Virus record (IMG/VR): IMGVR_UViG_3300034073_003340
Span: 62,001-126,000 of that record
Reading direction: 5' to 3' (one strand)
DNA length: 64,000 bases
Made by a program: the position numbers and the translations under genes. Of the stretch, positions 11,701-62,126 are shown one piece after another. Each line of letters starts with the position of its first letter. Position 1 is the stretch's first letter. Under the pieces are notes generated by a model. That model saw only the letters and a program-made list of their open reading frames with translations, made no database searches and was not told where the DNA came from.

Positions 11701-11867
11701 CAACGGCAATCTCGAGTGTGGAACTTGTCCCAGTCTTGAATGATAGCTATTTTGGTAACCTGCGTGAAATTAGATGTGCTCCTGATGAGCTGTTCTTCGC
11801 AACCGCGCAAGTAAGTGATGTAGATATTATCACTGCGAATACCCCGACAAACCTTAGGATTAGGTAA
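8703..11867 (+). CDS. Baseplate wedge subunit, gp6-like
   Basis: DFNTIRSAMVEY..DLLAY..ENFLDAARRRESILRLA..FGDGRFG..RMVSASDY. Confidence 0.85.
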   Translation: MSQSNRQSELFAGNDWLAAYRAFTEVNLNAFDFNTIRSAMVEYIRRNYPEDFNDWIESSEFVALIDLLAYLGQSLAFRTDINARENFLDAARRRESILRLARSLSYNAKRNYPARGLVKLTEIRSTFDVYNSTGRNLNNIAIRWDDPNNPDWFEQWVIVLNASLIETNPFGVPLKTENIDGVETQLYRVDNVPTTAGNYPFSATVNNQSYNFDICNADFNTSYGFVEREPDPNGPFHLIYRSDGNGNSSPNTGFFLYFKQGTLQKSDFSISEPQENRSIFIDTTGINETDVWVQSVDDFGSLIPDGSWTRVGHVPSDDIVKVLLTTENITYNSIDVDVQNIFQVVTQEQDRIALRFGDGRFGLSPVGNLRIWYRVSANQNLNIRPEDMQGLAINVPFFARNNTQKRLTLTFSLQEAVNNGVNSESNADVRRRAARVYGTQGRMVSASDYNELPVQTNLAVRLKAVNRVYSGQSRFIDLNDPTGNYQNTKVFADDGAFYLLEKNESQEVSQTVASVEEMITKYIADVAASVALRDFYSNWLYKSLPTGTDIYLPSFNRFSNDYTAKSDVRREVRENLELNRTFALGFNNEPGEGWYVLTSSEVNPDLDDPYEFVSTASPGPNSWLIHVEFNNNFWRITNRGLNYVFESERDCKFFFVSEYKSIDPNTGRAGADTVNLLKSPNNFKGVVLTNNEGGQNRLTSDLILKLEDPFIYDDGFHEPSRVKVRFNDRQSDGIPDVPFTYQALKNISTDDQGRLNQLAIVHLNTTDTDGYPVQRLIKRLEPDITQLLPGEYGYVERIDNGNVVDIYKGNPGYLIPRVDDIVGNSLRLNEQPTDYLVDGRSFTLREGVNNLVYQWNHFAPSSHRIDPAISNIVDIFVLTREYNDAMISWRNAGANPADMPKAPSELNLRTTFNPLEEFKMFSDEIVWRPVKFKLLFGQSAEPQFRSKFKIVKLAGTSMSDGEIKSRVIEAVRDFFEVNNWDFGETFFFSELGAYIHRQLATAISSVELVPVLNDSYFGNLREIRCAPDELFFATAQVSDVDIITANTPTNLRIR

Positions 11868-20800: not shown

Positions 20801-22267
20801 GAAAATCGAGACCTAAACAATTGGGACGAGAACTGGAATGGTGTTCGTCGAATGAAATTAAAGGTCAAGTTTGATCGTATCTCTTGTGGAACAATTAGAG
20901 GTTGGGATACTTCTCCGTGGGATCCTGCTTTGCTTGTTTACAGTCAGCTTGGTAGCTCAACTCAAAGTTTGAGTCAGCTAAGCTCGCTATACAGAACTGG
21001 TTCAACATCTGGATATAACTTTTATCGAGATCAATCAGTGGAAACTATAGAAGAACGAAATCTACTCGTCCGTAGAAATATTGTTACTCCTAGCCGTCCA
21101 GGAACCATCGTAACGGTGCTACAGACAAATGAAAACTTCATGTGGTCTGGTAGCGAGTGGATCAAATTTGAATCGCTAGGCTGGGATCAGGATCCTGACA
21201 TGGGAACCGCTACTAGGATTGAGTCTTCTTATAGACCAGAGCCTGGTATGAAGAGACGTGATGATCCTGGTCTGATTGCCGGATGTGAGTTTGATGGTAC
21301 CGTGATCTCTGATAGTTTTCAGGCCGACGCTTGGGATATCTTCGAATGGGACTCCACTGGATATAGTCAGGGCTTGCGTGAACGAGCAGGGGTTGATCAA
21401 GAAAGTGTTGATGGTAACACGACACCTCAAGATGAGGCAGACCCTGCTTATATCGGCACTACTGGAAATGAATTCAGTCAACCAGCGGTGAATGGAGGTA
21501 GACCACATGAGCTAGTTCAAATCAGAGGTGTTGAAAGCATTGTGGTAAATGTTTCCAGAAATAACGGTCCATATCAAAAGTCATTTATGAACCACAAAGG
21601 CGATTGGCAAGATATGTTGATTTCTGGTTCATCTCTGTCGTTTGTTTCATGGGACCAAACAAACCACAAATTGGTTGTCAGCGTTGCCTCTTGGACTGAA
21701 GACGCACAGGGCTTTACTCCGCTTCATGACCCTCAGAACCCTTCTACGGGCTTTATAAGGGACGTTATGGCGAGCAGAGCCTATCGCTCTACAAGTAATA
21801 TCGATATGACCTCAGCAGGAACAAAAACCTTTAAGTTGAGGAATTTGGGAGAAGTAGAAGGTATTCCTGCTGGTTTGCGCGGTGACGAAGTCAAAGTTGC
21901 TGTCATTAATCCAAAGAATCCTTCCATTAGAGCTATCGGAACCATTTCAAATTCCAAAGGAAACGAAATCAATTGGGATGGAAATGTTGAGATAACGTTT
22001 GATTCTGATGGATTCGTGGATTTAGGTTCTGGTAAGAGCTGGAATATCATCCCGGTTGATATGTTCAACACCCCAGGCATTGTCTGGGTTGGTGATGCTA
22101 GATTCACCTATAATAGTTTGACAATCAACGGCAACATGGTTGAACTCAATGAGGTCTTCCTATCTGGCAACACCTTGGCTCCCCTTAATATAGGCGAAGA
22201 TAGTATAAGCCTAGTCAAGACTAGCCCGGTTTTTGATGGTTCAAAACAACGTCAAATGGCCCGATAA
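11867..22267 (+). CDS. Giant virion structural protein (3466 aa; baseplate wedge/gp7-like position)
   Basis: Follows the gp6-like gene; VKPYHVKIRE motif and WD-rich C-terminus; internal CBM5/12-like module. Confidence 0.7.
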   Translation: MANNTRNNPFAFTPIVLDQDSHEKRRVIRQLPAVHQTETLQKFFGSSVDHLFDPGKGKPINGYVGQKPLWYEPDQDYYLEESTDDRNFYQLEASMVSKNSEGELTDLLPYPDLINQLRFQGALVNNHHRLFSQDFYTWCPPIDLDKIVNFRQYVWLPSDGPEIVNNAIIIKGPTVSYNSSGNDTTFDLPGYDNTGNASLQAFYDISVLTSDLIVAEVDGEPRPFSYVSGQTTITFDQRPPADASVSISVYSDLENNAIGLPNADPAAFGGISLSSGMRVIVLNDKNSDFSPDDVFIVEGVGQSIFLLNEKDYVGDSLSDYMVMARGATNRNEWSTGNRWFHVSTLPSNLDPDFVLRQRAKRPIIEFNRDLELHNYGLRRRLDVDLVIEDIEDLNGYLNQNPQNAVFSGISVSCVANSQINVTAINPATNAPYGNVDSIRVLVRNTVNPLLNNNILVLVNQGNVLKLILETDGENPSGEPVDGEVVKILLGFYAGKNLNWNGVNWVLSQNKGDVNQYPLFELYDLNGNNLADPVLYPNSTFAGSRLFSYKEDRSGLRPSDPILDMPLVYDNKGQILFENYLSTERYQYVIAGRFLDIDGFYFHKIGNIDPSLETLSNDWHKAPQKTRQFMVDRYVSDGRTKLFQISQDALEISVSRGRVNTDGSFEQTALVEDSDFIRVDRQIFILNIQLGDIIEIRTFNPANPPADAKGFYEVPLNLQANPDNAEVSDMTKGDFYDHFSEIMKRQDGFQGAEYSTNNYRDTAKLPNLGTNIIQHSAGLLKTMLLASQSQLDITSAIRFVESEYARFKDKFQQRILSYVANNRIGNAATYDTWINTALTELNKGKTKSFPFYLSGMAKNGTNQLPTFIPPTPSFLGVYPLYAPEIISQEVDGADDVWFVRGHDGSLTQGQNETVARVLLALEQRIFDSVPAAIRERERPVCDYQAAYGDQYRRNDYSYEEYLQILRPSFERWVVAFRLDPRENDLGQDTLESKINLKANPWTWNWSSTRTAAGEKVPGNWRGIYEKFFGTQRPDLTPWESLGFSIKPAWWDDRYGPAPYTSENLVLWEDLERGYIHDGDRKGINTEWARPGLRDYMPVDARGRLRHPGPRELIALNEVTVDTDLAYATDPLMWEDTRDDGVLGCGICTSVPLVQERKADWEWGDIGPVEQTWRRTSNFAFAASTAGYLMKPASFVEMGWNTQDMSLFFKGTMGEQYLNQDTKGRPAHRALQVHGEVLEDFSLVTKVGIQQWISDFLTSRNTSINSNLAERVRGLGTQLSYKIAGFTDSTTLGVVSDAFGRVPSEDVTVALFRSPSVREETYSGVAIEYTGRGYEVFGYDVLNPYFSTLPPAINGGKISVGDGLGSVSIPSWRPTTYFSVGITVRYQDNFYRAVRTHTSATFFEDEFWTQVARPQFADGSALIWYTDGEIEPIVEKVSYGTVFKDPQEVANFLNGYERYLESKGWIFENVGEDELEVRDWKSALRSFITWSGADARAAGDFISLSPASRMVQFSTDQGTIQPIEQIVNGLYAIVDQNGQPIDNQLTRVVRNDGNVSITCDNSTSGIFGLRLYISEMEHVLVFNNTTIFGDTIYSPLLNIKQPRLRLQGFKTVAWKGRIDAPGFIITGDTLTPNFERSADDFRRFFDIESMENKKLQDRARANFGYEEKEYLNNLLLTPTNQFEFYQGMIQQKGSPTSMRRLLRSNFIRHNKGLRLFEEWAFRVGDYGGQEVAPQLDILIRQSEFKHNPQLIQFSNSQSPNSFGIIDVIDENVGQDNRTLDGRWQWRPDMQSINWPLADFGQGDTPLPTAGYVNLSEVRFTVATDSDFENFFGDQEATEDPIENGDRVWVYGIGNGDPSTAWMTYRFTDTNYDMVNSFVPSHVDQGVIIQVQNDLQGIVDINTDPTQTPVFVAQNLVSNETDDNGIVVSGERLILKDIVGSDINPLATYIPKISNRASVTLDSTVGSETFIMSFYPEAKQIIRKVRVTIEEAFTEGSTLQIGHTGNPGLFVNVREEADRGIFPTNFDQEQVLIQTPALSYMPPNVTTADVNLVRVGRVGNFCAQTIVEWEWVRASDNQSFTGQVTYMRPSDYDSSRDQTEAYLQTIRVPVLAEDVVGGSEGTLTIRTNGVQTDTQVLRFERSTSARLNFVDLTRTGSYEFDSVNFSVFPWDSNLAGENRDMIATLFNTGSNGSVKIEVDYHYMKGFELTESINGSVVPVIASSEGGTANLFTWVKTRYPTLSGMPESLFEVGDLIEVDSAHDNPGYWAVYSRSTSGWDQIRRQNRKVDSSLITNAAIFNNKENQLKLVLQLYDPYKGFIPGVADRELTYKTFNDPATYNDGRLIWGKEQVGQLWWDLSAVRYLDYEIYDRWNGSDHEGVTYRWKNWGKVAPNSSVDIYQWVRSPVAPNGWADFVESKANLKIDNKPSGTVSEDSKFITDMEWNEEIQADETVYYFWVKNPTVVPTLASRKLSAQQVSNILTNPTSNDIPFFAVIDTNKCIVGGIKQFLNETDTVLKIKWLKEADVHNNHHKQWMLLREQDERNTINDTLWNKMRDSIVGWDATEKSVPDEKLPKNQQIGALVRPRQSWYPADITDLGQRPSRAARAAFVDAFNDIMSKQPFIDQWFGWEEVFDNGEALPSADRYVTTALDLIDLRNLLPATRNMVQVGECVLIENTMEVAGFWTLWRLAEINGQRTFVIEDFQKWRMQEGELWNLANWYAEGWSASNFPNYRFATYADRDAAGNLDVTLLKGTLVQVDVQSPTDDRWSWDVYTSTSKYQVAKARSTMRLTEAFYDKSRVEFGPVQVNGLLNASDDNRITPERIQELADLINFRDGSREIEFILNTMRTKLFDSLQKNNLFFAMVKSAFKQSINIDWAFKTSFLYLGGYSENLRQSPVAFKDQIDNVIAYLEEVKPYHVKIREYVRRLSYGPDLAALAMTDFDKPVYPSGTSNRVLDVNNTVDRSIMEINRPWRDWFENYLNENRDLNNWDENWNGVRRMKLKVKFDRISCGTIRGWDTSPWDPALLVYSQLGSSTQSLSQLSSLYRTGSTSGYNFYRDQSVETIEERNLLVRRNIVTPSRPGTIVTVLQTNENFMWSGSEWIKFESLGWDQDPDMGTATRIESSYRPEPGMKRRDDPGLIAGCEFDGTVISDSFQADAWDIFEWDSTGYSQGLRERAGVDQESVDGNTTPQDEADPAYIGTTGNEFSQPAVNGGRPHELVQIRGVESIVVNVSRNNGPYQKSFMNHKGDWQDMLISGSSLSFVSWDQTNHKLVVSVASWTEDAQGFTPLHDPQNPSTGFIRDVMASRAYRSTSNIDMTSAGTKTFKLRNLGEVEGIPAGLRGDEVKVAVINPKNPSIRAIGTISNSKGNEINWDGNVEITFDSDGFVDLGSGKSWNIIPVDMFNTPGIVWVGDARFTYNSLTINGNMVELNEVFLSGNTLAPLNIGEDSISLVKTSPVFDGSKQRQMAR

Positions 22268-33796: not shown

Positions 33797-34114
33797 TTAT
33801 TGTGCTCCTCCGAAAGTGAGTTTGAAAAGAACGGCGATATCAGGTTTTTCAAAATACCACCGTGAACCATTGCCATTGTGCCAAAAACTACTGCCTTTAT
33901 CCATACACCACGTCTTCATTTGGGAGATGGCAAAACCATCTGTTGGCTTGATATCAACGGTTGTCATCTCAGGCCAAGCTTCGCGGAGTCTTTTACTCCA
34001 ATGCTTGTCACGAGTGCTGATACCAACTGGCGGACAAAATAGAAGGCCCTGTTCTCGCCAGACCTTGATGTAGGCCTGAGTGGCCAGGCTTTGTGCTGTC
34101 TTGAAGTCCGTCAT
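33797..34114 (-). CDS. Hypothetical protein, FKL-motif family
   Basis: TGATG overlap with pth2; ends WYFEKPDIAVLFKLTF. Confidence 0.7.
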   Translation of the reverse strand: MTDFKTAQSLATQAYIKVWREQGLLFCPPVGISTRDKHWSKRLREAWPEMTTVDIKPTDGFAISQMKTWCMDKGSSFWHNGNGSRWYFEKPDIAVLFKLTFGGAQ

Positions 34115-34572
34115 CAGCCGACCACCGAGAATCGCTTGGTGATCGCATGAGCCTGCTCCTTGGTACAAGGACCAATACCAAGCGCAGTCACGATGGGATT
34201 ACCATCGAATGCCGTGCCGGGCATGATGTGGTTCTTGTCAATGATAAGCGAGGTGATCAGGCCAGCTTCCTGTGCGGCTTCATAAGCGCGCATAATTGCG
34301 GCTTCGTTCTTGGCCTTAAGGATGACCTGGGTGCCGATGAAGTCTGGGCCCTGGTAAACGCGCAGGAGCTCAGGATCGCGACGGCTCGCGAGAAGCACAC
34401 AGTTCTTGGCCGCATGACAAGCCTGACTTGCCATCTTGCCTGGAGTCATGTCCAGGTCGCCGCGAATGATGCTGTAGATGCGAAGCTTTTCGGAGGCTGC
34501 TTCGAATGCCTGGTAGTCGTTGTCGTTGTCGTAACGAGCAGCGGCTTCCTACAAGAAAGAATTCGTGATCAT
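34114..34572 (-). CDS. pth2: Peptidyl-tRNA hydrolase, Pth2 family, with in-frame UAG at codon 8 (34551-34549)
   Basis: KLRIYSIIRGDLDMTPGKMASQACHA and TALGIGP Pth2 motifs; the conserved first strand lies upstream of the track ATG 34449; every upstream in-frame ATG/GTG/TTG (SD-backed ATG 34572) precedes a TAG. Confidence 0.85.
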
Positions 34573-34612
34573 TTTCATTCCTTTCATCTTTTGTCCAACA
34601 TCGGACAACTTC

Positions 34613-34640
34613 AACTTAGTAGGCAATTAGGATATGTCAA
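34613..34640 (-). promoter_or_regulatory. Sigma70-type promoter of pth2
   Basis: TTGACA-N16-TAAGTT upstream of ATG 34572. Confidence 0.55.
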
Positions 34641-34648
34641 CCTACTTT

Positions 34649-35011
34649 TTACCTCCAACGCAATTTAAACATCATTGCGTCTTTGGAATTCTCAAAAACA
34701 ACACCAACGCTAGTGCTACAACCACTAGACCAGCCCACGGCTTCCCAACTACCAAACTTGGTATTATCGGCGCACCATTGCTTGATTTCACCCATGGAAT
34801 GCCATGTGAAGCCAAACATACGGACCAGGAACCAGCCCGGAAACTTGCTGTTGATGGAAGGGGCGAAATCAGAGTCCTCAAAGTCATCATCCTCGAAGAG
34901 CGCATTACGCTCTTGCTGGGCTGACTCAGCTTGCTCGGGAGTTTCTTCGGCGATAACACCATCACGGTCGAAATAATCGACCCACACTAATTCATTCATC
35001 TCAACACTCAC
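34649..35011 (-). CDS. Hypothetical protein, FKL-motif family
   Basis: Ends VVFENSKDAMMFKLRWR. Confidence 0.7.
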   Translation of the reverse strand: MSVEMNELVWVDYFDRDGVIAEETPEQAESAQQERNALFEDDDFEDSDFAPSINSKFPGWFLVRMFGFTWHSMGEIKQWCADNTKFGSWEAVGWSSGCSTSVGVVFENSKDAMMFKLRWR

Positions 35012-35091
35012 TTTCTAAACTAAATCACAAACGGATTAGCAGCGAGTGGAGGTGCCCTTGGGGCCTAGTGGTGTGTTAGGATCTTTTTCAT
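35008..35091 (-). promoter_or_regulatory. Putative regulatory mini-ORF MKKILTHH*(UAG)APRAPPLAANPFVI*(UAG)FRK*(UGA)
   Basis: Manual translation; amber followed by a RAPP motif; terminal TGA overlaps the GTG start of the next gene. Confidence 0.5.
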
Positions 35092-35094
35092 GCT

Positions 35095-35454
35095 CTACTT
35101 ATACTGATCTAATACGTAAGAGTCAATAACTAATGACAATTTAGACATTATGGCGTCGTCAGCAGTCTGCGTTCTCACTATCAGACGCATTTGGTATTTT
35201 ACTGGCCCTGAAGTCTCTCTTATCTCCATATAGGTATAGAAATGACCCTTTGTATAATCAAGCAATTGCTTGAAAATCTTAGGATTCGGCCAATAATAAA
35301 ATGATGGGTGTTCGCAATCAAACCAGTCTTTTGCGAACCAATGCTGAAGAGAGATCTCCGTTGACCATCCCTCGGTTACTACTACCTCGGTGGATCTATT
35401 GAATTGAATATAGTCTGATCTAAGAGCCTTTGTGACTCTGCGGATGTCAGTCAA
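35095..35454 (-). CDS. Hypothetical protein, degenerate FKL-motif family; TAG stop
   Basis: DDAIMSKL near the C-terminus; overlaps the upstream gene. Confidence 0.6.
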   Translation of the reverse strand: MTDIRRVTKALRSDYIQFNRSTEVVVTEGWSTEISLQHWFAKDWFDCEHPSFYYWPNPKIFKQLLDYTKGHFYTYMEIRETSGPVKYQMRLIVRTQTADDAIMSKLSLVIDSYVLDQYK

Positions 35455-35890
35455 AATAGCCTCGGTCTGCGGCCAGGTTCAGCAGACCGCGATAGACTCG
35501 CATATTAGGTCTATACGGACCCCGTCCAAAATACTTTCTGTCGTCCCCATAGAGGGCCTTTTCAAGGGCCGCGGCAACCGCTGCGCTCCGACACTGCCCC
35601 ATGAGACAGTGAACGTAGATGACGCTTACATTGCGCTCTTTCATCGATTCAACGAAGTCTAAGATCTTTTCAGCATGACTGTCGTTGAAGAGAATACGAG
35701 TTTCCTCTTCCGGTTCGCCGTTCTTATATTCGTCGATATCATGGAACTGTAGGTTGAGTCTTGCGACCAAATGCCCATTCTCATGAACTTTTGGAAAATC
35801 ACCATTTTCACAGATACTGATTAGAGCCCACGACTTCTCAGGCGGACTCACTGCCATCATAGTGGCGCGGCTGTAAACGACAAATTTCAT
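35447..35890 (-). CDS. Protein-tyrosine/dual-specificity phosphatase-like protein
   Basis: VHCLMGQCRS CX5R motif; LISI..F.DI..PN pattern. Confidence 0.85.
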   Translation of the reverse strand: MKFVVYSRATMMAVSPPEKSWALISICENGDFPKVHENGHLVARLNLQFHDIDEYKNGEPEEETRILFNDSHAEKILDFVESMKERNVSVIYVHCLMGQCRSAAVAAALEKALYGDDRKYFGRGPYRPNMRVYRGLLNLAADRGYFD

Positions 35891-35920
35891 AACCAAACAT
35901 TACAGCACGCCGTCTAGTTG

Positions 35921-36739
35921 TCAATCAGCTTCTGGTGGTGTCTTGTTGATATCACCGCGCTGGGCCTGATACCAGTTGTAGACGCAGCGGTCGAGACCAA
36001 TCGCAATCTCGAGGACTAACGCGTCTTTTTCCACAATATCTTTCTTGCCCTGGAAGGTCAGCTTCTGAGGGAAATCAGTCCGAAGGCTGATCGAGCAGAC
36101 TTCCATCCACTTGTCGCCATTCCAAATTTCCACATCCATGGTTCGCTTGCTATAAGCGGGCAGTCGATCACTTTCCACCAGCCGGGTGGGTAGGTGTACC
36201 ATTGCGCCGATCATCTGCTGAACCTTGGGCAACATGGCTTCCTGATAATCCATACCAGAATCAGCAGTGAAGATACACTGGAACTCCTGCTGGTAGAACT
36301 CTTTTAGCCGCATATGCTTGGTGGGCTGGATAATTTCTCGACGAAAGCTTTTACCGGCTTGCCATACGACCAAGGGAGGGAAAACCTTGGGATGAACGTT
36401 ATTCAGTAGATGTTGCGCATAGGCATAGCTACCTGGCGTGGTCTCGGGACGAAGCGCGAGGATGCGTGGTGGAGGGCTAGCCTCACTATCGACCCACTTT
36501 TGATCTTCCTCACTCAATCGAGGATCTTGCTCCCAAATGTCGTTGGCAGTGTAATTGACGTTGAGGAGATCACGCGGGTTGAGCAGTGGAGCCTCGATCT
36601 GGAAAAACTTCCAGCGATCATTGAGGGCCTGAAGTTCTACCTGAATACGAGCGGCAAAGAAATCTCGCATAGTCTCACGAAGCTTGATCTCTTCCTCGTT
36701 CCAAAACACAAGGCCATTGATATTGAAGATGTTCTGCAT
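35921..36739 (-). CDS. Glycyl-tRNA synthetase (alpha2-type)-like catalytic core without anticodon-binding domain
   Basis: LRPETT, QAGKSFRRE..RLKEFYQQEFQ (motif 2), AYSKRTMDVE, EVCSISLRTDF, VLEIAIGLDR (motif 3); ends about 20 aa after motif 3. Confidence 0.85.
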   Translation of the reverse strand: MQNIFNINGLVFWNEEEIKLRETMRDFFAARIQVELQALNDRWKFFQIEAPLLNPRDLLNVNYTANDIWEQDPRLSEEDQKWVDSEASPPPRILALRPETTPGSYAYAQHLLNNVHPKVFPPLVVWQAGKSFRREIIQPTKHMRLKEFYQQEFQCIFTADSGMDYQEAMLPKVQQMIGAMVHLPTRLVESDRLPAYSKRTMDVEIWNGDKWMEVCSISLRTDFPQKLTFQGKKDIVEKDALVLEIAIGLDRCVYNWYQAQRGDINKTPPEAD

Positions 36740-36741
36740 TT

Positions 36742-37113
36742 TTAGTTCAACCTTATATGAGCCGGAAGAGGCAGGAACTCGTCGGTCTTGGGAAATCGAA
36801 TATGGGTGGCGACAGTGTCGCCATTCTCATGAATGATCACACGGAAAGTCAACTCCAACCCTGCATAGGCGAAGTTTCGAGCACAAGCGCCTTCGAGGCC
36901 TAACTCCTCTGCGTCAATTACTCGGTCGTCCTTGGTGCTGTAGACACGAAAGCCGTCCCAGGTCAGAGGAAAACAAGGCTTCTTGGCTCTCTCCTCACGG
37001 CGAGCACGCTCTACACGGATGTTAGCTTCCAAGCGGTCGAGGCATTGGTCATCCATCTTGTCAATGGGTATATCATCATAATTTGCGGTTCCCGTGTGAT
37101 CAATTATACCCAT
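36742..37113 (-). CDS. Hypothetical protein between tRNA-Sup and the GlyRS-like gene
   Basis: GAGGT SD; tightly packed. Confidence 0.65.
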   Translation of the reverse strand: MGIIDHTGTANYDDIPIDKMDDQCLDRLEANIRVERARREERAKKPCFPLTWDGFRVYSTKDDRVIDAEELGLEGACARNFAYAGLELTFRVIIHENGDTVATHIRFPKTDEFLPLPAHIRLN

Positions 37114-37131
37114 GATTTACCTCAAATTCGG

Positions 37132-37204
37132 CCTCCCCGCCGAGATTCGAACTCGGGTCTCGCGATTTTAGAGATCGCTGCTCTACCAACTGAGCTACGG
37201 GAAG
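37132..37204 (-). tRNA. Amber suppressor tRNA, anticodon CUA
   Basis: Canonical cloverleaf: acceptor CTTCCCG/CGGGGAG, D-arm GCTC-AGTTGGTA-GAGC, anticodon arm GCGAT-CT[CTA]AA-ATCGC (anticodon 37171-37169), T-arm CCGAG-TTCGAAT-CTCGG; G73; followed by CCG, not CCA. Confidence 0.93.
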
Positions 37205-37215
37205 ATGTAACCTGT

Positions 37216-37677
37216 TTAGGATTTATTCTCCAGCGCGTCAAGACGCTCCATGATCTCGCGGAGCAATCGAACTTGCTCGTCCGACTGTTTTTTGAGAATT
37301 TCTTGTTCTTCGTGCGTAAAGGCATTGCTGTCAACGATCAAATGTGCTGACATCTTTGCCGTGATAATCGGCACGACCAGAAACACGCAAATAAACATGA
37401 ACGCACCGCCAACCAACTTGGAGATCAAGTGGGTGGGATATAGATCACCATACCCCACCGTCGTAGCAGTGACAGTGGCCCACCAAAAGCTATTGGTGAG
37501 GTCTTTGCCCTCTACGATACTAAAGGTGACCGCAGCGATAGTCATTGTTATAATGAACAACATGACCATGGGAAGGACCTTGTTGGCCATCTTCTGCATG
37601 ATGTTCATTTGAACCATAGGTTGGGCAATAGCAATATCATAGATATCACTACCAACCTTTTCAATTCCCTTACGCAT
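37216..37677 (-). CDS. Potassium channel (2-TM, KcsA-like)
   Basis: [16 protein letters not shown] selectivity filter between two TM helices. Confidence 0.92.
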
Positions 37678-37700: not shown

Positions 37701-38294
37701 TCAGTCGAGTTCGCTATACTTGCTGGCCATGCGGTCCGACATGCGCTGAAGTCCACCGGCAATGGTCTGGTAGACCGAAGCAAACACTCGCTGGAGGAAG
37801 TCACCAACGAAAGTGCCGATGAACGAAAAGGGCCAAAACACCATCCAAGTGGTGATACGACCCTTGTTATAGCGGACCATTCGGTTTACATTGATGTCAA
37901 GTGCCTTGACATCATAGATGCTATTGAAAGCATCACGTACCGCAGCATCAGCTGGCATTTCCTTGAGACCCCGGCTTTCCAGAAAGCGCCAGCGAAGTGT
38001 TTCATAGCGATCGAAAAGCTTGGGCAGAAAGAATAGACGCCACTTGATGAATGCCCAAATGGCAGCAATGCCCACATATGCCAAGGCACCGTATACCACA
38101 TAGAGTGGATTATCCTGGATAAAATCCAGAACAGGTGCGTTGGTAAATGCCACAATAGCGGCAACCGTGATCAAAAGAGTGAGGGTGGCCGATCCGACCT
38201 TTTCCGAGTCGATCTGAGCCGCGAGGATCAGAGTAACAGTGCCGACGATAATCCAAAAGAGGACACCGCCGAACGTGATGAGTTCTGCAATCAT
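37701..38294 (-). CDS. Hypothetical membrane protein
   Basis: Three N-terminal TM segments; [11 protein letters not shown]; ATGA overlap with cysS. Confidence 0.7.
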
Positions 38295-39640
38295 GTTCGT
38301 CTCCATTCGGTGCCGTGAACGCCATCGGCCAGCGTGATCCCCATTTCACTTAACTGCTGACGGATCCTATCAGCTTCTTCATAATCTTTGGCTTTTCGTG
38401 CTTCTTGACGAGCAACCACTAGAGCATCAACCGCTTCCTTGTCAACACCTAGAGTTCTCCATTGATGTGGAGTATGGTTTAACAGTCCAAGAAGTTTGCC
38501 TGATTTGATCAACTTAGCCTTAAGTGGGGCCTTTTCCCTACTAGAATCAAGCTCGCTAGCCAAAGCGTGTAGAGCGGTAATAGCCGCAGGTGTATTGAGA
38601 TCCTGAAAAAGCTTAGAGGTGAATTCCCCGGTCAGGCTAGTATCTTCAGCCCAATTAATGTCGTCCCATCGATAAAGGATGTCATAAACCCCTGACAAGG
38701 ATTTATGAGCCTGCTCCAAAGCCTCCCATGAAAAGTCCATGGGTGAACGGTAATGGGTTCGGAGAAAATAGTATCGAACGGTCTCGGCCGGATACTTCTC
38801 GAATAGATCACTTAGAAGAATCACATTGCCGCGACTCTTGGACATCTTTTCACCGTTTACCGTCAAAAGCCCATTATGGACCCAATAACGAGAAAGTGGT
38901 TTGTCCATAGCACAATGACTTTGCGCGCATTCTGCTTCATGATGAGGGAAACGAAGATCAGCACCGCCCCCATGTATATCAATTGTCTGTTCCTGGAACT
39001 CTTTGGCAATCATCGCCGAGCATTCAATATGCCAGCCGGGTCTGCCGTCACCCCAAGGACTGCTCCACCGTGGCTCTCCAGACTTAGCAGGCTTCCAAAG
39101 GACAAAATCTCTGGGATCCTTTTTCTTTGGATCAACTACCACTCGACCACCGGATCTAAGATCATTATGATTGGCTAGACCTGGATGTGGATTACTGGGC
39201 ACGTGAAAAAAGACTTCACCCTTAGAAACATAGGCATGCTTGCTAATGATCAATCGCTTGATCAAAGTTCGCATTGCTTGAATGGATTCAGTGGCTTTGG
39301 GCTCGACCGTTGGTGGTAGACAATTCAATGCCTTGAGGTCGTTGTGATAGGAAGCAATAGCCGGATCAGTGATTTGACTGATGTCTACCGTCTGCTGCGA
39401 TGCTGCTTCAATGATTTTGTCATCAATGTCAGTTATGTTACGGGCATAGCGGACATGATCTTCGCCATAGATATATCGCAGAACTCGGAATAGCTGATCG
39501 AAAACCAGTGCGGGTCTCGCGTTACCAATATGAGCAGGACCATAGACCGTAGGTCCGCAAACATACATCATGACCTGCCTAGGGTCCCCAGGCGTAAAGG
39601 TCTCAGTCTGTCGAGATTGGCTGTTATAAATTTCCAACAT
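38291..39640 (-). CDS. cysS: Cysteinyl-tRNA synthetase
   Basis: MYVCGPTVY, HIGN, DFVLWK, GRPGWHIECSAM, DIHGGG.DL.FPHHE, KMSKS. Confidence 0.97.
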   Translation of the reverse strand: MLEIYNSQSRQTETFTPGDPRQVMMYVCGPTVYGPAHIGNARPALVFDQLFRVLRYIYGEDHVRYARNITDIDDKIIEAASQQTVDISQITDPAIASYHNDLKALNCLPPTVEPKATESIQAMRTLIKRLIISKHAYVSKGEVFFHVPSNPHPGLANHNDLRSGGRVVVDPKKKDPRDFVLWKPAKSGEPRWSSPWGDGRPGWHIECSAMIAKEFQEQTIDIHGGGADLRFPHHEAECAQSHCAMDKPLSRYWVHNGLLTVNGEKMSKSRGNVILLSDLFEKYPAETVRYYFLRTHYRSPMDFSWEALEQAHKSLSGVYDILYRWDDINWAEDTSLTGEFTSKLFQDLNTPAAITALHALASELDSSREKAPLKAKLIKSGKLLGLLNHTPHQWRTLGVDKEAVDALVVARQEARKAKDYEEADRIRQQLSEMGITLADGVHGTEWRRT

Positions 39641-39674: not shown

Positions 39675-40064
39675 TTAGAAGTTGCCTAAGAATGCTAGCT
39701 TAAACAAAGCAGCATGAGCTCTATTGCCAAACTTGGCAGTCAGTTGGGTAGTTCTTTTGTTGGTTAAAAAGTAGTTCAAGCCCAAGTCGACTTTGAATTC
39801 AAAGTATGCTTGATCCTGAGTTATACAATTGCGAGCCCATTCCATTACATTGGTTCCTTGGATTTCAAACGGAGCCCGCTCAAGAATTCCAGTGGAGTCA
39901 TCTGGATGCCACTCACTGGTGATATCAAAAGGAATAACAAATTTAACCTTATAAGGCATTACCAGATGCCAAGGATCTGATCTAAAGCTGTATTTGAATT
40001 TCTTGATGTTATCTAAGGGGTGATCACCGCCTCCATAGCGCGTTGATCTCTTATGCCAACTCAT
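39675..40064 (-). CDS. Hypothetical protein, FKL-motif family
   Basis: Ends KFGNRAHAALFKLAF. Confidence 0.65.
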   Translation of the reverse strand: MSWHKRSTRYGGGDHPLDNIKKFKYSFRSDPWHLVMPYKVKFVIPFDITSEWHPDDSTGILERAPFEIQGTNVMEWARNCITQDQAYFEFKVDLGLNYFLTNKRTTQLTAKFGNRAHAALFKLAFLGNF

Positions 40065-40894
40065 AGGTCCTCGCCAGCCCATTCCCTGGCAGCAGCTTTA
40101 CTGACACCATCGACAACTTTTTCCAAGTCGCAGGCATACAGTCCGGCGCAGCTGAATCCGTTGAGTTCAACAATCTTTGGACCATCTTCAGTTAGAGCAA
40201 CATCACAGGTATAAGCGATATCCACCTGCCATTCATGTTGCGCAACTTTTTGTGCCAACTCCCAACACTCCTGCGGCCAATCACGTCGCACGTCCAGTTT
40301 GCCATCCCAGCGATATTCTGATCCGGCAATAACCTGTTTGTCAGCGATAACAAAGCGGAATTCACCTTGGATATCCACACCGGGATTGATCAAAATCAGT
40401 GTGTCTTCCATTACCCCACTGATCTGTTCCAAGGTAGAGATATCGTCATCCAGCAATCCAAATTTGATTCGCTGGCCAGCAAATGTCTTGAACCCACTAT
40501 TAGGTCGGACAAAGAGCAGATTAGTATCGTGCTCATAAAATAGTTCACGAGCTCTCTGTTTGAACATGGACCATGTCATGAATTTGGCTTCTCGATTGAG
40601 AAACCAATTCAATGGCAAATAGCTCATATACTGAGTCGCAGAAGTCCGCAGATTTACCCCAAGCTGTCCAGGCTGGAATCTACCGTCTGGGTTTACTTTT
40701 TTGGTAAACTCGTGCGAACCGTAGAGAACTACTGGTCCATCAATGTTATCGATGTGGGAATAAGTCCCGTCGTCTTCTCGTTCAATCTCGATCACATTAT
40801 GACCAAGAGAACGAATAACATCAGGTAGAGGGCGCTGACCATAGATCATGCGCTCAATAATGAAATCGTCGAGGATCCAAGTGACTGGGGTCAT
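40061..40894 (-). CDS. ATP-grasp domain protein (DUF4343/R2K-like)
   Basis: FVRPNSGFKTFAG, EFRFVI, YTCDVA..KIVELNGFSCAGLY. Confidence 0.8.
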   Translation of the reverse strand: MTPVTWILDDFIIERMIYGQRPLPDVIRSLGHNVIEIEREDDGTYSHIDNIDGPVVLYGSHEFTKKVNPDGRFQPGQLGVNLRTSATQYMSYLPLNWFLNREAKFMTWSMFKQRARELFYEHDTNLLFVRPNSGFKTFAGQRIKFGLLDDDISTLEQISGVMEDTLILINPGVDIQGEFRFVIADKQVIAGSEYRWDGKLDVRRDWPQECWELAQKVAQHEWQVDIAYTCDVALTEDGPKIVELNGFSCAGLYACDLEKVVDGVSKAAAREWAGEDL

Positions 40895-40934
40895 CCCACT
40901 ATATTAGGGTAGGATGGCCCCAAAGTCAACCAGC

Positions 40935-41282
40935 TTATGCTGCCTGTTGAATATCTTCCTGATAATTCTGCTCAAACGGCAGTTCAGTCAGTATTTCAAC
41001 GTCGTCGCTAAGCCTCTCAATTTTTAGATTGGCTTCGGCCATCAAGGTTAGCATCATATGACGAAGCTGCTCCGACATCTGAATAACCTTGACATCAGGA
41101 TCAAGGTTGGCATCACGACGTATTTGATGAATACGGTCCTTGGCCGCTTTGCGAGCCTGTTGTAGAAGCATTCTGCCAACAGTCTGGCTCACCACATCAA
41201 GAGATACCTCTTCAGTTTGTTCCAGGGCTTCAGGAGCAATTTGAGTTAGGTCTAGGTTGAACTCTACTTTGAACTTTGACAC
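40935..41282 (-). CDS. Hypothetical protein
   Basis: GTG start with GGAGA SD; long structured leader. Confidence 0.65.
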   Translation of the reverse strand: MSKFKVEFNLDLTQIAPEALEQTEEVSLDVVSQTVGRMLLQQARKAAKDRIHQIRRDANLDPDVKVIQMSEQLRHMMLTLMAEANLKIERLSDDVEILTELPFEQNYQEDIQQAA

Positions 41283-41499
41283 AGTCGATCTCCCAAACGG
41301 GTCTCTTATGCGGAAAAGGAAGAATGCTCAGACCAAAAGGGACAAGTCCCAAGGGGCAAAAGCCCTATTCCGATCTGTGTGCCTAAGCATGTCCTGTCCA
41401 CTAGCAGAAAATTTGTAAGAAGCCAAGAGCAAAAAGCATTTTACTTTTTAGTCCAGTTTTTCTGAAAAATCCTGTCACTGTTTTGACAAAAACCCGGTA

Positions 41500-41826
41500 T
41501 TATGATTTATTTGAATACAATCCAAAACTTATGAAAAGCGGTAAGTCCGTCTCGTTATAAAGACTATACGGACCTAATTTGAAATAGAGCGCTTCTCTTA
41601 CGTCTTTGAAAATAATACGTATATAGGTATGAGGGATATGATCAGGTGTTGGAGAAATTTCCTCTATCTGGCTCAAGTCCCAAGGACTTTTACAATTCTT
41701 ATATAACCAGATCTCCACAAAGCTATAAAGAAGATCAATATTGATCTTCTTCAAATGCGTCACCTCAAGGGTAACGGTGAAACCATCAACCAAAGACTGT
41801 GAATGAGACTCTCTTATCAAGTTCAT
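41500..41826 (-). CDS. Hypothetical protein, FKL-motif family
   Basis: IIFKDVREALYFKL. Confidence 0.6.
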   Translation of the reverse strand: MNLIRESHSQSLVDGFTVTLEVTHLKKINIDLLYSFVEIWLYKNCKSPWDLSQIEEISPTPDHIPHTYIRIIFKDVREALYFKLGPYSLYNETDLPLFISFGLYSNKS

Positions 41827-41875
41827 CCCGTATTTATGAGTTGCGCTAACTTCTTAGCGCAACTCACTCAGGGCT

Positions 41876-43078
41876 TCACTCACACAGATTAGTATCCCTG
41901 AAATCACTCCAGGAAGTTCCACCCCACAGGTGACGCATTGAATTCACCTTGGTCTGGCTACCAAGCTGCGAACCCACATACTTGATCAACAGTGAATAGA
42001 CCCCTTCTTCGCCATCTGCCAATCGGTCCCAAGTCGAAAACTTAAAGCCCTGGAGCCCGTTCTTTTCGCTGGTAACCTTTTCAGCAAACTTCTTCTTGCT
42101 ACCGTTGAAGTTGTCGAAATCCGCCTGGACTTCCCAGTAGAGTTCGCTTGCTAGCTTCTTCAGTCCTACGAAAATGCTCTTGGCAAAATCGTCAGCAGCC
42201 TGAACTAGGTCCTCGGGCAGAAAAGGCTTGGCGTCATCCAGCTTTTCGTCCACGATCAGACGAATAACATCCTTTTCATGGTTGAGATGTTCCAGCGTCT
42301 TATGGAGCAGCGAATACCATTCTCCCTTCAGCTTGAGCATGGTGCCGTCTGCCCAACGGAAAACATCACCTTCCTCGCCCTCAACTCCTCGGATCTCGGC
42401 AATGGTTTCGTCGTCAATGCCAGTGATCTCGCCGGAAAAAGAACAACAAGGAATGCCATAGGAGGCGGCTTCCTCCTTGAGCAAAGGAGCATCCATATAC
42501 TCACCGGTTTCGTTGTCGCGAATAGCAGTCAAAACCAGCTGAGTCACGGGATAATCGATAACAATGCGCTGAATGCGAGAGCACCATTCAAAGATCGGAG
42601 TCTTGCCCTGGCTCATCCAATACTTACAGAACTCGTGATACTCAACACGATCCTTGGCCCACACGTCCACCGGCGCAGCCACGCCAGTAAGACCCATCTT
42701 GGTGCAGAAGCGCACTTCGCCCTTGATCAGCAGAGGAGTGATCATCGAACCATCAAGCTTCTTGAATCGACGATACGGCTTTGACCAATCGACTGATCCC
42801 GGCATAGTCTCAGGACGTTCTCCGAGGTTGAAGAACTTGTGATACTTGCGAGAAATCACCTTGCCAGTCGCAGTATCAAAGGTGATGCCGCGACATTCGC
42901 GCAACAGTGCCGTCCGTCGATCAGTTACTGGCGGGAAGGTATCTTCGAAATTGACGAGATAGTTGATCACGGTGTATCCGTGCTCTTCGTCCACCTTGAC
43001 CACAAATTCTTCGCGGCCCTCAATGGCTTCAAGAATTTCCGACAAATGCGTAATCTTGGGAAATTGATAGGAAGTCAT
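41876..43078 (-). CDS. RNA ligase, T4 Rnl1-like
   Basis: RECRGITF, KFFNLGE, KLDGSMI (motif I), FEW, EG.V, KLKGEWY. Confidence 0.92.
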   Translation of the reverse strand: MTSYQFPKITHLSEILEAIEGREEFVVKVDEEHGYTVINYLVNFEDTFPPVTDRRTALLRECRGITFDTATGKVISRKYHKFFNLGERPETMPGSVDWSKPYRRFKKLDGSMITPLLIKGEVRFCTKMGLTGVAAPVDVWAKDRVEYHEFCKYWMSQGKTPIFEWCSRIQRIVIDYPVTQLVLTAIRDNETGEYMDAPLLKEEAASYGIPCCSFSGEITGIDDETIAEIRGVEGEEGDVFRWADGTMLKLKGEWYSLLHKTLEHLNHEKDVIRLIVDEKLDDAKPFLPEDLVQAADDFAKSIFVGLKKLASELYWEVQADFDNFNGSKKKFAEKVTSEKNGLQGFKFSTWDRLADGEEGVYSLLIKYVGSQLGSQTKVNSMRHLWGGTSWSDFRDTNLCE

Positions 43079-43203
43079 TGATTTCACCTTTGCGTTTGGT
43101 TTTAAACTATTGCTGACAAGAAATTTCCTGCTCAGCGTCAATGTTGGATAATGACACTGAACAGGAAATTGTCAACCAGACTTTGGTGTCTAGACACCAA
43201 AAA

Positions 43204-61906: not shown

Positions 61907-62126
61907 AACTTTACCATAAGATAATAGAACAGCATTGTCACTCTCGATCTTGGGGAGCCGCCGCTCCCCGCCTTCTGCCTGCTCTCGAGACTCGCGGTCT
62001 CTCGGTGCGTTGATCCGTAATCACCTCCTCAGGTATAAAGTATGGCAGGCTCCAGCAAAGCATTGTGCTTCAAGATGTGTCCGAAGACCTGCTTAGAATA
62101 CAGGAGATCTTCGGACACGTCATTAT

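Follow-up and report, generated by a model that had tools for sequence, protein, structure and literature searches.

Phage-encoded suppressor tRNAs have been linked to stop-codon recoding, with TAG or TGA reassignment reported in crAss-like, Lak and other large phages (Ivanova 2014; Borges 2022; Peters 2022; PMC12636597), where dozens to hundreds of genes, mostly late genes, carry many internal stops, the stop is largely abandoned as a terminator, and expression of some genes is proposed to depend on the tRNA. Short leaders that test the decoding machinery are used in prfB (RF2) autoregulation, which relies on a +1 frameshift at UGA, in trpL and hisL attenuation, which senses shortage of a charged tRNA and acts on transcription, and in TnaC, which stalls at the stop itself. 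The RAPP/RGPP arrest peptides (ApdA, ApdP, ApcA and the Streptomyces set; PMC7897499, PMC10951233, PMC12992588) carry an RxPP core at the end of a small upstream ORF, with the downstream ribosome-binding site in a hairpin that a stalled ribosome would open; known members are 50−130-residue secretory or membrane proteins whose arrest is relieved by pulling force. Among synthetases, the closest described enzymes are the class IIa alpha2-type glycyl-tRNA synthetases (440−690 aa; PDB 8t5n, 1ati, 5z5e) and, by gene arrangement, the pyrrolysyl-tRNA synthetase/tRNA-Pyl system.

We analyzed a 64,000-nt window (positions 62,001 to 126,000 of IMG/VR record IMGVR_UViG_3300034073_003340) of a 435,856-bp contig from a giant soil phage, a Rhizobiaceae-type jumbo phage related to Sinorhizobium phage Phosso and Agrobacterium phage Atu_ph07. 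A first-pass annotation had described, within 3.1 kb on one strand, a canonical CUA tRNA, a 272-aa class II synthetase core with alpha2-GlyRS motifs but no anticodon-binding domain, a mini-ORF with UAG followed by a RAPP motif, and a pth2 gene interrupted by UAG at codon 8. All four elements were confirmed, and the region consists of the following features, all on the minus strand.

37132..37204 (−), amber-suppressor tRNA with anticodon CUA, discriminator G73 and C1:G72
36742..37113 (−), small ORF of 123 aa between the tRNA and the enzyme
35921..36739 (−), GlyRS-like class II catalytic core of 272 aa, with no anticodon-binding or insertion domains
35447..35896 (−), dual-specificity-phosphatase-like protein, conserved between the enzyme and the gated module
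35098..35126 (−), conserved promoter-like motif TTGACT-N17-TATAAG
35020..35091 (−), mini-ORF MKKILTHH-UAG-APRAPP..., a proposed stop-gated arrest leader, with UAG at 35065−35067 and RAPP at 35047−35058
35004..35049 (−), predicted hairpin whose 5′ arm (second Pro codon plus CUCGC) pairs with GUGAGUG just upstream of the start of gene X
34649..34999 (−), gene X, 116 aa, function unknown, the proposed regulated output of the arrest leader
34591..34608 (−), conserved stem-loop (UUGUCC-loop-GGACAA) about 20 nt upstream of the pth2 SD, role unknown
34114..34572 (−), pth2 with an early UAG at 34549−34551

ARAGORN found one tRNA in the window, at 37130−37204 (−), and Rfam RF00005 matched it over its full length at 37132−37204 with 63.1 bits against a 29-bit threshold. 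The gene ends ...GG-CCG, indicating that CCA is not encoded. In an alignment of nine orthologues, 15 of 21 pairs showed compensatory changes and none was broken, while the loop CUCUAAA and G73 were invariant, showing that the gene is under selection as a tRNA. Its body is most like phage tRNA-Trp(CCA), and the best blastn hits were tRNA-Trp. The ‘tRNA-Pyl’ label printed by ARAGORN, and repeated for a related phage in the AP-J-162 paper (PMC11242549), reflects the anticodon only. The locus does share with the pyrrolysine system a CUA tRNA next to a class II core of about 270 aa that would ignore the anticodon, but the D-loop, variable loop and T-loop are normal, and the enzyme matches GlyRS far better than PylRS (1e-16 against 3e-4).

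The 272-aa protein matched Pfam tRNA-synt_2b (4e-9) and the NCBIfam GlyRS model PRK04173 (4e-15), the latter with only 55 bits against a 312-bit cut-off and over the core only. The AF2 model had a pLDDT of 91, and its best PDB matches were alpha2 GlyRS, with which motifs 2 and 3 and the RPET, QxE and ExS/A-xGxDR elements align. Motif 2 (FRRE), motif 3 (GLDR), E99, E152 and E244 were invariant, the catalytic motifs and the acidic residues that align with GlyRS being so in 35 sequences, and A246 stands where GlyRS has the motif-3 Ser. The small ORF between the tRNA and the enzyme had no Pfam match and is not a constant part of the system: homologues occur only in three related genomes (L012−L014; L numbers denote the related phage sequences compared), and it is absent in L011, L015−L017 and Phosso.

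The UAG in pth2 is not a defect. The first canonical start lies at 34449, but the Pfam PTH2 match begins 10 codons upstream of it, and the NCBIfam Pth2 match also starts upstream of this Met. The reading frame instead consists of an SD (34580−34585), ATG 34572, six more codons (MITNSFL), TAG as codon 8, and 33 codons, including strand beta-1, before the internal ATG. Whether homologous genomes carry a sense codon at this position had been named in advance as a point that could count against the reading; an early in-frame stop was found in 15 genomes, comprising the window’s own, L011−L017, Phosso, L099−L102, L238 and Atu_ph07 (L224 is the same phage as L101, and L237 is near-identical to Phosso). 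In these genomes an SD-ATG is followed by 2−6 codons, the stop, 20−50 codons with no start and the Pth2 fold. Leaders of 3−7 codons including the ATG are always in frame, and no ATG, GTG or TTG follows until the family-conserved Met inside the domain. Variable columns by codon position numbered 2/1/4 in the leader and 7/6/22 after the stop, against 6/7/5 in the upstream non-coding sequence, revealing coding periodicity on both sides of the stop. The stop is TAG everywhere except in Atu_ph07, whose only suppressor tRNA is UCA (PMC6102473; L091:30714−30788) and in which both gating stops, of pth2 and of the mini-ORF, are TGA. The stem of the stem-loop upstream of the SD changes by compensatory substitutions among L010−L017, and a longer stem stands at the same place in Atu_ph07.

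A single RAPP in the mini-ORF could have been chance, since two occur in the six-frame translation, but its conservation in relatives rules this out. The arrangement [stop]-x(2−6)-RxPP was found in 13 genomes, with cores APR[AG]PP (6 genomes), VQRGPPP (2), LHRSRSPP (3), NNSPRSPP (1) and HHPSQARDPP (1), and Atu_ph07 has IVFKPP-stop, each directly after the gating stop. Variable columns by codon position were 2/1/11 for the mini-ORF and 1/1/6 for TAG plus 6 codons in six genomes, in which four different codons encode the same Arg. RAPP and RGPP are the most robust arrest cores and are refractory to EF-P, RxPP alone can stall, and ApdP comes from Sinorhizobium (PMC12992588; PMC10951233), the likely host group of this phage. 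The locus resembles the known arrest systems in its RxPP core, in the predicted stall with RAP in the P site and Pro in the A site, and in the hairpin over the downstream ribosome-binding site. It differs in that the nascent chain at the arrest point has only about 14 residues, without a signal or membrane segment, and the motif is reachable only after a stop codon is read through, making decoding of UAG, not protein export, the input. Known RAPP peptides depend partly on upstream residues (PMC10951233), which here include the unknown amino acid inserted at UAG. The promoter-like motif ends 6 nt before the mini-ORF ATG, implying a leaderless or near-leaderless mRNA; it was read directly from the sequences and is conserved in 12 genomes, but was not picked up by a strict sigma-70 consensus scan, which demands T at position 6 of the −10 element. 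Its role is inferred rather than shown.

The hairpin pairs the Pro-Pro codons and following bases with the ribosome-binding site of gene X in every lineage, using different sequences: CCACUCRC/GUGAGUG, CCUCCUCCA/UGGAGGA, UCUCGUUCUCC/GGAGAACGA, UCCUCCUUU/AAAGGAG, CCUCCAUAG/UUAUGGAG and UCUCCUCC/GAGGAGA. The RNAalifold helix was kept in 6 of 6 genomes, and single-sequence MFE folds agreed in 13 genomes, although their Z-scores ranged from −0.5 to −3.1 and the outer helix is nearly invariant within the window’s clade, so that true compensatory changes were seen mainly between clades. Gene X, with an acidic N-terminus and a conserved C-terminal domain, is always just upstream of pth2; its 93 homologues are all unnamed, and no Pfam, PHROG or PDB match was found.

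The locus shares with the recoded phages a phage-encoded suppressor tRNA, in-frame stops in phage genes and the proposed role of making expression of some genes depend on the tRNA. In contrast to those phages, TAG still ends 7 of 73 crudely called genes in the window (about 10%), against 36 for TAA and 30 for TGA. No other early-TAG gene and no other stop-gated RxPP leader occurs in the 64 kb, only these two elements carrying a single stop each, always within the first 3−10 codons, and one of them would act through a regulatory leader.

We favor, with fair confidence, a targeted suppressor-dependent translational switch, in which phage-encoded amber-suppressor tRNA(s) decode two deliberately placed early UAG codons. 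In this view, pth2 starts at a strong SD-ATG and only readthrough produces a Pth2 with its first beta-strand, whereas termination yields a 7-residue peptide. If UAG in the mini-ORF is decoded, the ribosome would translate RAP and stall with the second Pro codon in the A site, covering the 5′ arm of the hairpin that otherwise sequesters the ribosome-binding site of X, so that X is translated; if RF1 wins at UAG, the ribosome would leave about 20 nt before the hairpin and X would stay off. X and Pth2 would therefore be made in proportion to UAG readthrough, meaning suppressor tRNA supply and charging relative to RF1 activity, which could serve as a timer or as feed-forward compensation for the side effects of the suppressor. 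As in prfB and the attenuators, an early stop or test codon in a short leader would sense the decoding machinery to set expression of a downstream translation-related gene, but here successful decoding of the stop is what would lead to the stall and to activation. The comparisons demonstrate the conservation, the coding periodicity across the stops, the covariation of stop and anticodon and the sequestering hairpin, whereas the occurrence of readthrough, arrest and unmasking, and the purpose of the module, are our inference: all evidence is comparative, and nothing in it shows expression, charging, readthrough or arrest. In addition, no CUA tRNA was seen in the stretches available for L224 and L238, whose suppressor is assumed, and the lack of a known function for gene X leaves the biological purpose unassigned. 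The interpretation offered by the first-pass annotation was supported in part: its proposal that UAG readthrough gates specific genes in a genome that is not globally recoded gained stronger support than the sequence alone could give, its suggestion that Pth2 clears peptidyl-tRNA when termination is disturbed is plausible but was not put to a test, and its dedicated, possibly orthogonal enzyme/tRNA pair was not established.

That pairing, in which an anticodon-blind synthetase would insert glycine or another small residue at UAG through a phage-private tRNA and so drive the module, is possible but doubtful. The survey for co-occurrence in related phages, proposed beforehand as a test, gave evidence in both directions. 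The tRNA lies on the same strand 50−1950 bp upstream of the enzyme in 9 of 9 genomes of the closest clade, as the only tRNA within ±6 kb, and the block of tRNA, small ORF and enzyme is precisely absent as one unit from an otherwise collinear relative, L224. The absence of any anticodon-binding domain means that a CUA anticodon would be no obstacle, the invariant G73 and the pyrimidine-rich 5′ acceptor strand fit no obvious host identity set, and a C35U change should weaken TrpRS recognition, although these identity arguments were not tested here. However, L224, L238 and Atu_ph07 keep the stop-gated X and pth2 without the enzyme at or near the locus, and the window’s own genome has a second, different CUA tRNA (A73) 195 kb away. 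The enzyme family has about 1800 members with near-identical active-site motifs, which in other huge phages sit directly after Gly, Glu, Ala, Ser, Tyr or Val tRNAs or far from any tRNA. The acceptor stem does not match known tRNA-Gly identity elements, shared synteny among related genomes can be simple inheritance, and the phage carries other synthetases (CysRS and a short class I enzyme), which suggests a general translation toolkit. The GlyRS-like core is probably a real adenylate-forming enzyme for glycine, which may or may not charge this tRNA.

It is also conceivable, though unlikely, that the module senses release-factor activity rather than, or as well as, the suppressor tRNA, with slow RF1-mediated termination raising readthrough and inducing X and Pth2 to deal with stalled or dropped-off peptidyl-tRNA, the tRNA merely setting the baseline. 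The architecture responds to the tRNA/RF1 ratio by construction, a stop within the first 8 codons lies where peptidyl-tRNA drop-off is most frequent, the induced enzyme is a peptidyl-tRNA hydrolase, and the logic resembles prfB autoregulation at an in-frame UGA. There is no evidence that these phages alter RF1, and the switch of both stops to TGA in the phage with the UCA suppressor points to the tRNA as the matched partner, although it is equally compatible with RF2 sensing there. We consider it very unlikely that no suppression takes place and that the leaders are ordinary upstream ORFs, with Pth2 and the APRAPP peptide made by re-initiation or by initiation at a non-canonical codon after the stop. 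Annotators of Phosso and Atu_ph07 called pth2 from the internal ATG, and near-cognate codons (ATT, ATC, CTG) exist after some of the stops, but the leader ATG is in frame despite different leader lengths, periodicity runs through the leader and starts immediately after the stop, no conserved alternative start exists, the stop type follows the suppressor anticodon, and the conserved mini-ORF peptide begins at the codon right after the TAG. Sequencing or assembly errors, or pseudogenising mutations, for which nothing speaks beyond the bare presence of a stop, are refuted by the same feature in 15 independent assemblies from isolates and metagenomes, with an invariant stop amid synonymous variation.

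Finally, the dual-specificity-phosphatase-like protein matched Pfam DSPc at 3e-5, below the cut-off, and orthologues were found in all relatives except Atu_ph07. A second DSP-like gene lies near the second CUA tRNA.

To place the window in its genomic context, we compared it with related phages. The parent genome, IMG/VR contig UViG_3300034073_003340 (435,856 bp), to which the synthetase-like gene and the tRNA pattern both map at 100% identity, has as its nearest cultured relatives Sinorhizobium phage Phosso (469 kb, syntenic at about 73% nucleotide identity) and, more distantly, Agrobacterium phage Atu_ph07 (490 kb, Polybotosvirus), from which we infer that the host is probably a member of the Rhizobiaceae. 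Genes run on the + strand up to about 25.8 kb and on the - strand thereafter. The elements described in the first-pass annotation (a CUA tRNA, a class II synthetase core, a UAG-containing RAPP mini-ORF and a UAG-interrupted pth2) were all confirmed. Its interpretation was supported in part: UAG gating of specific genes in a genome that is not globally recoded is backed by comparative evidence, whereas a dedicated pairing of the enzyme with the tRNA is not established. The features considered here were as follows.

37132-37204 (-): the only tRNA of the window, anticodon CUA
35921-36739 (-): 272-aa GlyRS-like class II core
35020-35091 (-): mini-ORF MKKILTHH-TAG-APRAPP...
34649-34999: gene X, 116 aa, function unknown
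34572: ATG of the pth2 leader, preceded by a good Shine-Dalgarno (SD) sequence and followed by six codons
34549-34551: in-frame TAG of pth2
34449: first canonical start of pth2 after this TAG
34591-34608 (-): stem-loop about 20 nt upstream of the pth2 SD
35447-35896 (-): dual-specificity-phosphatase-like gene
37216-37677 (-): 153-aa potassium-channel-like protein
38291-39640 (-): full-length cysteinyl-tRNA synthetase (CysRS)
40061-43141 (-): R2K-type ATP-grasp gene and T4 Rnl1-like RNA ligase
62127-63518 (-): 463-aa class I synthetase-like protein
11867-22267 (+): uninterrupted 3466-aa ORF

The tRNA, for which an independent tRNA search had been requested in advance, was recovered by ARAGORN and by Rfam at 63 bits, with a cloverleaf carrying a 7-nt anticodon loop, U33, a purine at position 37 and CUA at positions 34-36. 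Orthologues stand upstream of the enzyme in eight IMG/VR genomes and in Phosso, and in the alignment of these nine sequences 15 of 21 stem pairs showed compensatory double changes and none was broken, while the D-arm, the loop CUCUAAA and the discriminator G73 were invariant, pointing to selection on a tRNA gene. The 3' CCA is encoded in 5 of 9 orthologues but not in the window's copy (CCG at 37129-37131), which must therefore rely on a CCA-adding enzyme, and relatives encode a tRNA nucleotidyltransferase (PMC6102473); transcription, CCA tailing, aminoacylation and UAG decoding in vivo were not measured here. The tRNA body is closest to phage tRNA-Trp(CCA), from which a single C35U change would make it an amber reader, a derivation that we infer. 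A PylRS/tRNA-Pyl pair was considered and rejected, because the tRNA has a canonical D-loop with GG, a 5-nt variable region and a TTCGA T-loop in place of the short D-loop, 3-nt variable loop and elongated anticodon stem of tRNA-Pyl, and because the enzyme matched GlyRS at 1e-16 and PylRS at 3e-4 in a profile search. The "Pyl" label given by ARAGORN, and by the paper on the related phage AP-J-162 (PMC11242549), reflects just the anticodon.

We next examined the early stop in pth2. The Pth2 domain match (PF01981; 76 bits against a 23-bit cut-off, profile positions 3-113 of 115) begins 10 codons upstream of the canonical start at 34449 and reaches full length only when the 33 codons between the UAG and the first ATG are included, and the frame is open back to the TAG. 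In the window and its closest IMG/VR relatives (L010-L017), pth2 begins SD-ATG-[I/L][T/I/S]NSFL-TAG-EA..RY..DND..FEAAS.KLRIYSIIRGDL.M. Variable alignment columns by codon position were 2/1/4 in the leader, 0/0/0 in the TAG, 7/6/22 in the 33 codons after it and 6/7/5 in the 21 nt of 5' UTR, indicating protein-coding selection in one frame on both sides of an invariant TAG; a sense codon at this position in homologous genomes had been named beforehand as grounds for refuting the proposal, and these genomes did not show it. More distant relatives have different leaders but the same plan: MKY-TAG in Phosso, MTYN-TAG in L101/L224 (one 480-kb phage), and MSY-TAG, MTM-TAG, MTAFT-TAG and MSN-TAG in the related phage genomes L100, L102, L099 and L238, respectively. 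No ATG, GTG or TTG follows any of these stops until the Met that is itself a conserved residue of the Pth2 fold, and the annotated 110-aa products of Phosso and Atu_ph07 would lack strand beta-1. The stem-loop upstream of the pth2 SD is kept by compensatory changes at the same place in L011-L017 and Atu_ph07 (L009:9877-9915), with stems UUGUCC/GGACAA, GGUAUCC/GGAUAC and GACGUCC/GGACGC; its role is unknown, and it could be a processing site, an operator or a terminator without a U-tract.

The identity of the gating stop followed that of the suppressor. Atu_ph07 pth2 reads MIGEHF-TGA-INYEE..., and the 33 tRNAs reported for this phage include exactly one suppressor, with anticodon UCA (PMC6102473), which we located at L091:30714-30788 of its genome. 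This tRNA has A73 and an unrelated body and is therefore not an orthologue of the CUA tRNAs. Two non-homologous suppressors, each matched by the stop in the same gene, are hard to explain unless the stop is decoded by the tRNA.

We initially treated the RAPP mini-ORF as a chance occurrence, since RAPP is found twice in the six-frame translation, about as expected, but this view was overturned by its conservation upstream of the same gene X in relatives. The element reads MKK[IV]LT[HQ]H-TAG-APRAPP in L010-L013, MKTNIHV-TAG-APRAPP in L014 and MKKILTHH-TAG-APRGPP in L017. Over TAG plus 6 codons the variable columns were 1/1/6, and the Arg is written AGG, CGG, CGA or CGC. Other lineages carry MNTNKHH-TAG-VQRGPPP (L015, L016), M..HL-TAG-LHRSRSPP (Phosso, L101 and L237, the last near-identical to Phosso), MAHITYT-TAG-NNSPRSPP (L238) and MNTHY-TAG-HHPSQARDPP (L100), while Atu_ph07 has MK-TGA-IVFKPP-TAG, again with TGA as the gate. 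In a distant relative (L239:2400-2520), gene X itself starts ATG-CAC-CAC-TAG and continues in frame, which is direct gating without an RxPP leader, behind the same promoter-like motif. RAPP and RGPP are reported as the most robust arrest cores, refractory to EF-P and purged from proteomes (PMC12992588), and RxPP alone can stall, with RAP-tRNA in the P site and Pro-tRNA in the A site; ApdP is a Sinorhizobium peptide (PMC10951233). The element thus has the R-x-P-P core near the end of a small ORF upstream of the regulated gene that characterizes RAPP-type arrest peptides, although elongation arrest was not assayed, but it lacks the N-terminal signal or membrane segment that provides force-dependent release, since only 5-10 residues precede the gating stop and no hydrophobic segment is present. 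In the window, gene 35095-35454 (-) ends in TAG and is followed in the same frame by the mini-ORF, giving three in-frame TAGs within 25 codons before a TGA (35020-35097), so that a suppressor would extend this protein only slightly.

The predicted RNA structure of the leader was consistent with unmasking of the ribosome-binding site of X. In every lineage the minimum-energy fold paired the Pro-Pro codons and the next few bases with the stretch 5-10 nt upstream of the X start codon, and the inner part of the hairpin differed completely between genomes but still paired. The arm sequences co-varied between lineages: CCACUCRC/GUGAGUG, CCUCCUCCA/UGGAGGA, UCUCGUUCUCC/GGAGAACGA, UCCUCCUUU/AAAGGAG, UCUCCUCC/GAGGAGA and CCUCCAUAG/UUAUGGAG. 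A ribosome stalled at RAP/P would cover the 5' arm, whereas a ribosome terminating at the gate stop would sit about 20 nt short of it, a step inferred from ribosome footprints. A conserved TTGAC(T/A)-N17-TA(T/A)A(A/T)(G/A) motif, read directly from the sequences, ends 5-7 nt before the mini-ORF ATG in 12 genomes, suggesting a leaderless transcript; a strict sigma-70 consensus scan did not recover it, because its -10 element ends in G or A.

Gene X is always immediately, or one gene, upstream of pth2. Its family has only 93 members among 5.8 billion proteins searched, all unnamed and all from large phage contigs, and searches of Pfam and PHROGs, and of PDB and BFVD with an AF2 model and Foldseek, gave no match beyond the Atu_ph07 orthologue and thus no lead on its function. 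Within the 64 kb, no other gene has the early-TAG form and no other stop-RxPP leader exists. TAG terminates 7 of 73 crudely called genes, and long ORFs, including the 3466-aa one, are intact in the standard code, so that global reassignment of TAG was rejected for this window, which covers just 64 kb of the 436-kb genome; whole-genome tRNA surveys of this contig and of Phosso were not carried out, nor were the complete genomes of Phosso, Atu_ph07 and this contig scanned for further conserved early-stop ORFs. The module may serve as a timer set by tRNA expression, as feed-forward compensation for suppressor-induced read-through and drop-off, or as a sensor of RF1 activity, none of which we could single out. 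As one idea only, the arrest would occur on a nascent chain of about 14 residues, a length prone to peptidyl-tRNA drop-off, which would create a substrate for Pth2.

The AF2 model of the 272-aa enzyme was confident (pLDDT 91, pTM 0.89) and consisted of a single domain, and Foldseek placed alpha2 GlyRS first (8t5n, 1ati, 5z5e; E about 1e-14) and ProRS next. The protein matched Pfam tRNA-synt_2b and, partially, GlyRS models. A profile of 35 members aligned RPET, FRxE...R.KEF.Q.EFQ and V.E.A.G.DR to the corresponding GlyRS elements, with Ala standing where GlyRS has Ser. The class II motifs 2 and 3 are present, with GlyRS-type residues around the amino-acid site, and R133, E135, G248 and R251 are invariant, as are E99, E152 and E244; these residues are assigned to glycine binding by reference to the GlyRS structures. 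In contrast to alpha2 GlyRS, the protein is the catalytic core only and lacks the C-terminal class IIa anticodon-binding domain: it ends about 20 residues after motif 3, has no HGTP_anticodon hit, and fell short of the curated equivalog scores (55.5 bits against 312 for PRK04173 and 31.9 against 243 for TIGR00389). The family has about 1800 members of 245-300 aa, often named "glycyl-tRNA synthetase" by JGI, and occurs in Phosso, in 0.6-Mb uncultured phages, in Xanthomonas phage XbC2 and in Brevundimonas and Caulobacter jumbo phages. Charging of tRNA-Gly with glycine was not assayed, and only genomic context bears on it: Gly tRNAs are the commonest immediate neighbour in distant homologues but far from the only one.

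To address whether the enzyme is the partner of the tRNA, we examined their co-occurrence with the gated pth2 in related phages, a survey that the first-pass annotation had itself proposed. In 9 of 9 genomes of the nearest clade, tRNA(CUA) lies on the same strand 50-1950 bp upstream of the enzyme, as the only tRNA within +/-6 kb. In L224 the order CysRS-255-259-260-261-phosphatase-263-264-X-266-pth2 is collinear with Phosso, with the one exception that the tRNA, ORF 257 and the enzyme are missing together. However, L224 still has both TAG gates, as does L238, which has no cassette between CysRS and X, and Atu_ph07 has no homologue of the enzyme at all. The window's genome contains a second CUA tRNA (L177:382-457, -, on the same contig about 195 kb away) with A73, a different acceptor stem (GGCCUUU...) and an encoded CCA, which may be the ancestral reader of the gates, and CUA tRNAs of this D-arm type are common in IMG/VR, with at least 120 hits. 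An exact D-arm pattern search and blastn for an orthologue of this second tRNA in Phosso or the L101 phage were uninformative, and genes next to it and next to the Atu_ph07 UCA tRNA contain no synthetase-like domain. More distant homologues of the enzyme lie directly after Gly (4 cases), Glu (3-4), Ser (2), Ala, Tyr or Val tRNAs, or near no tRNA. The small ORF between the tRNA and the enzyme was considered as an obligatory tRNA-binding partner and rejected, because it is absent in half of the clade. The phage also encodes the full CysRS (TIGR00435, 460 bits), conserved upstream of the module in Phosso, L224 and L238, and the 463-aa class I protein, which has HIGH-like and KMSKS motifs and an anticodon-binding domain but, at about half the length of Val/Ile/LeuRS, apparently lacks the editing insert, suggesting that the enzyme may belong to a general set of pared-down synthetases. 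We regard the dedicated-pair reading as doubtful. A bolder form of it, in which the tRNA(CUA, G73) and the GlyRS-like core are a natural, minimal, anticodon-blind orthogonal pair carried as a mobile cassette, and the stop-gated RxPP leader and pth2 form a dedicated sensor-effector circuit reading out the activity of that pair, is compatible with the data but unlikely; if true, it would be a phage-built genetic-code-expansion switch with its own reporter.

The system works like two known things joined together, phage suppressor-tRNA-dependent expression and RAPP-type arrest peptides that unmask a downstream ribosome-binding site. It is not a globally recoded phage, a Pyl system, a canonical GlyRS or a force-sensing monitoring substrate, each of which fails a defining feature tested here. 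Our data establish conservation at the sequence level, and all steps of the mechanism beyond it are inferred without bench evidence. Suppressor tRNAs are common in large phages, but outside globally recoded genomes their purpose is mostly unknown, and the papers on Atu_ph07 and AP-J-162 list the tRNA as "suppressor" or "Pyl", annotate pth2 from an internal Met, and mention the suppressor tRNA and the Pth genes separately, without linking them (PMC6102473, PMC11242549). Here the targets can be named as one conserved two-gene module, gated twice by an early stop whose identity tracks the suppressor anticodon of the phage, with one gate being an RxPP arrest peptide that would become reachable only after readthrough. 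In the full-text literature searched we found no description of a stop-gated arrest leader, of such an input for a ribosome-arrest switch, or of stop-gated pth2. If confirmed, the module would provide a direct and easily assayed natural reporter for suppressor tRNA activity in Rhizobiaceae phages, a compact part of about 130 nt that converts amber suppression into translational activation, and a concrete test bed for whether a 270-aa class II core can act as a stand-alone synthetase.

Other genes around the two CUA tRNAs also drew our attention. A dual-specificity-phosphatase-like gene lies within about 1.5 kb of each of them (35447-35896, -, in the window, and L177:1291-1824, -); if the tRNAs are transcribed from promoters abutting their 5' ends, an RNA 5'-triphosphatase role is conceivable, although this is pure speculation. 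The potassium-channel-like protein, with the TVGYGD selectivity filter (Pfam Ion_trans_2), is wedged between CysRS and the tRNA and is present in most of the clade but not in Phosso. The R2K-type ATP-grasp gene and the T4 Rnl1-like RNA ligase lie next to CysRS, as in Phosso, L224 and Atu_ph07, and may be a tRNA repair set.
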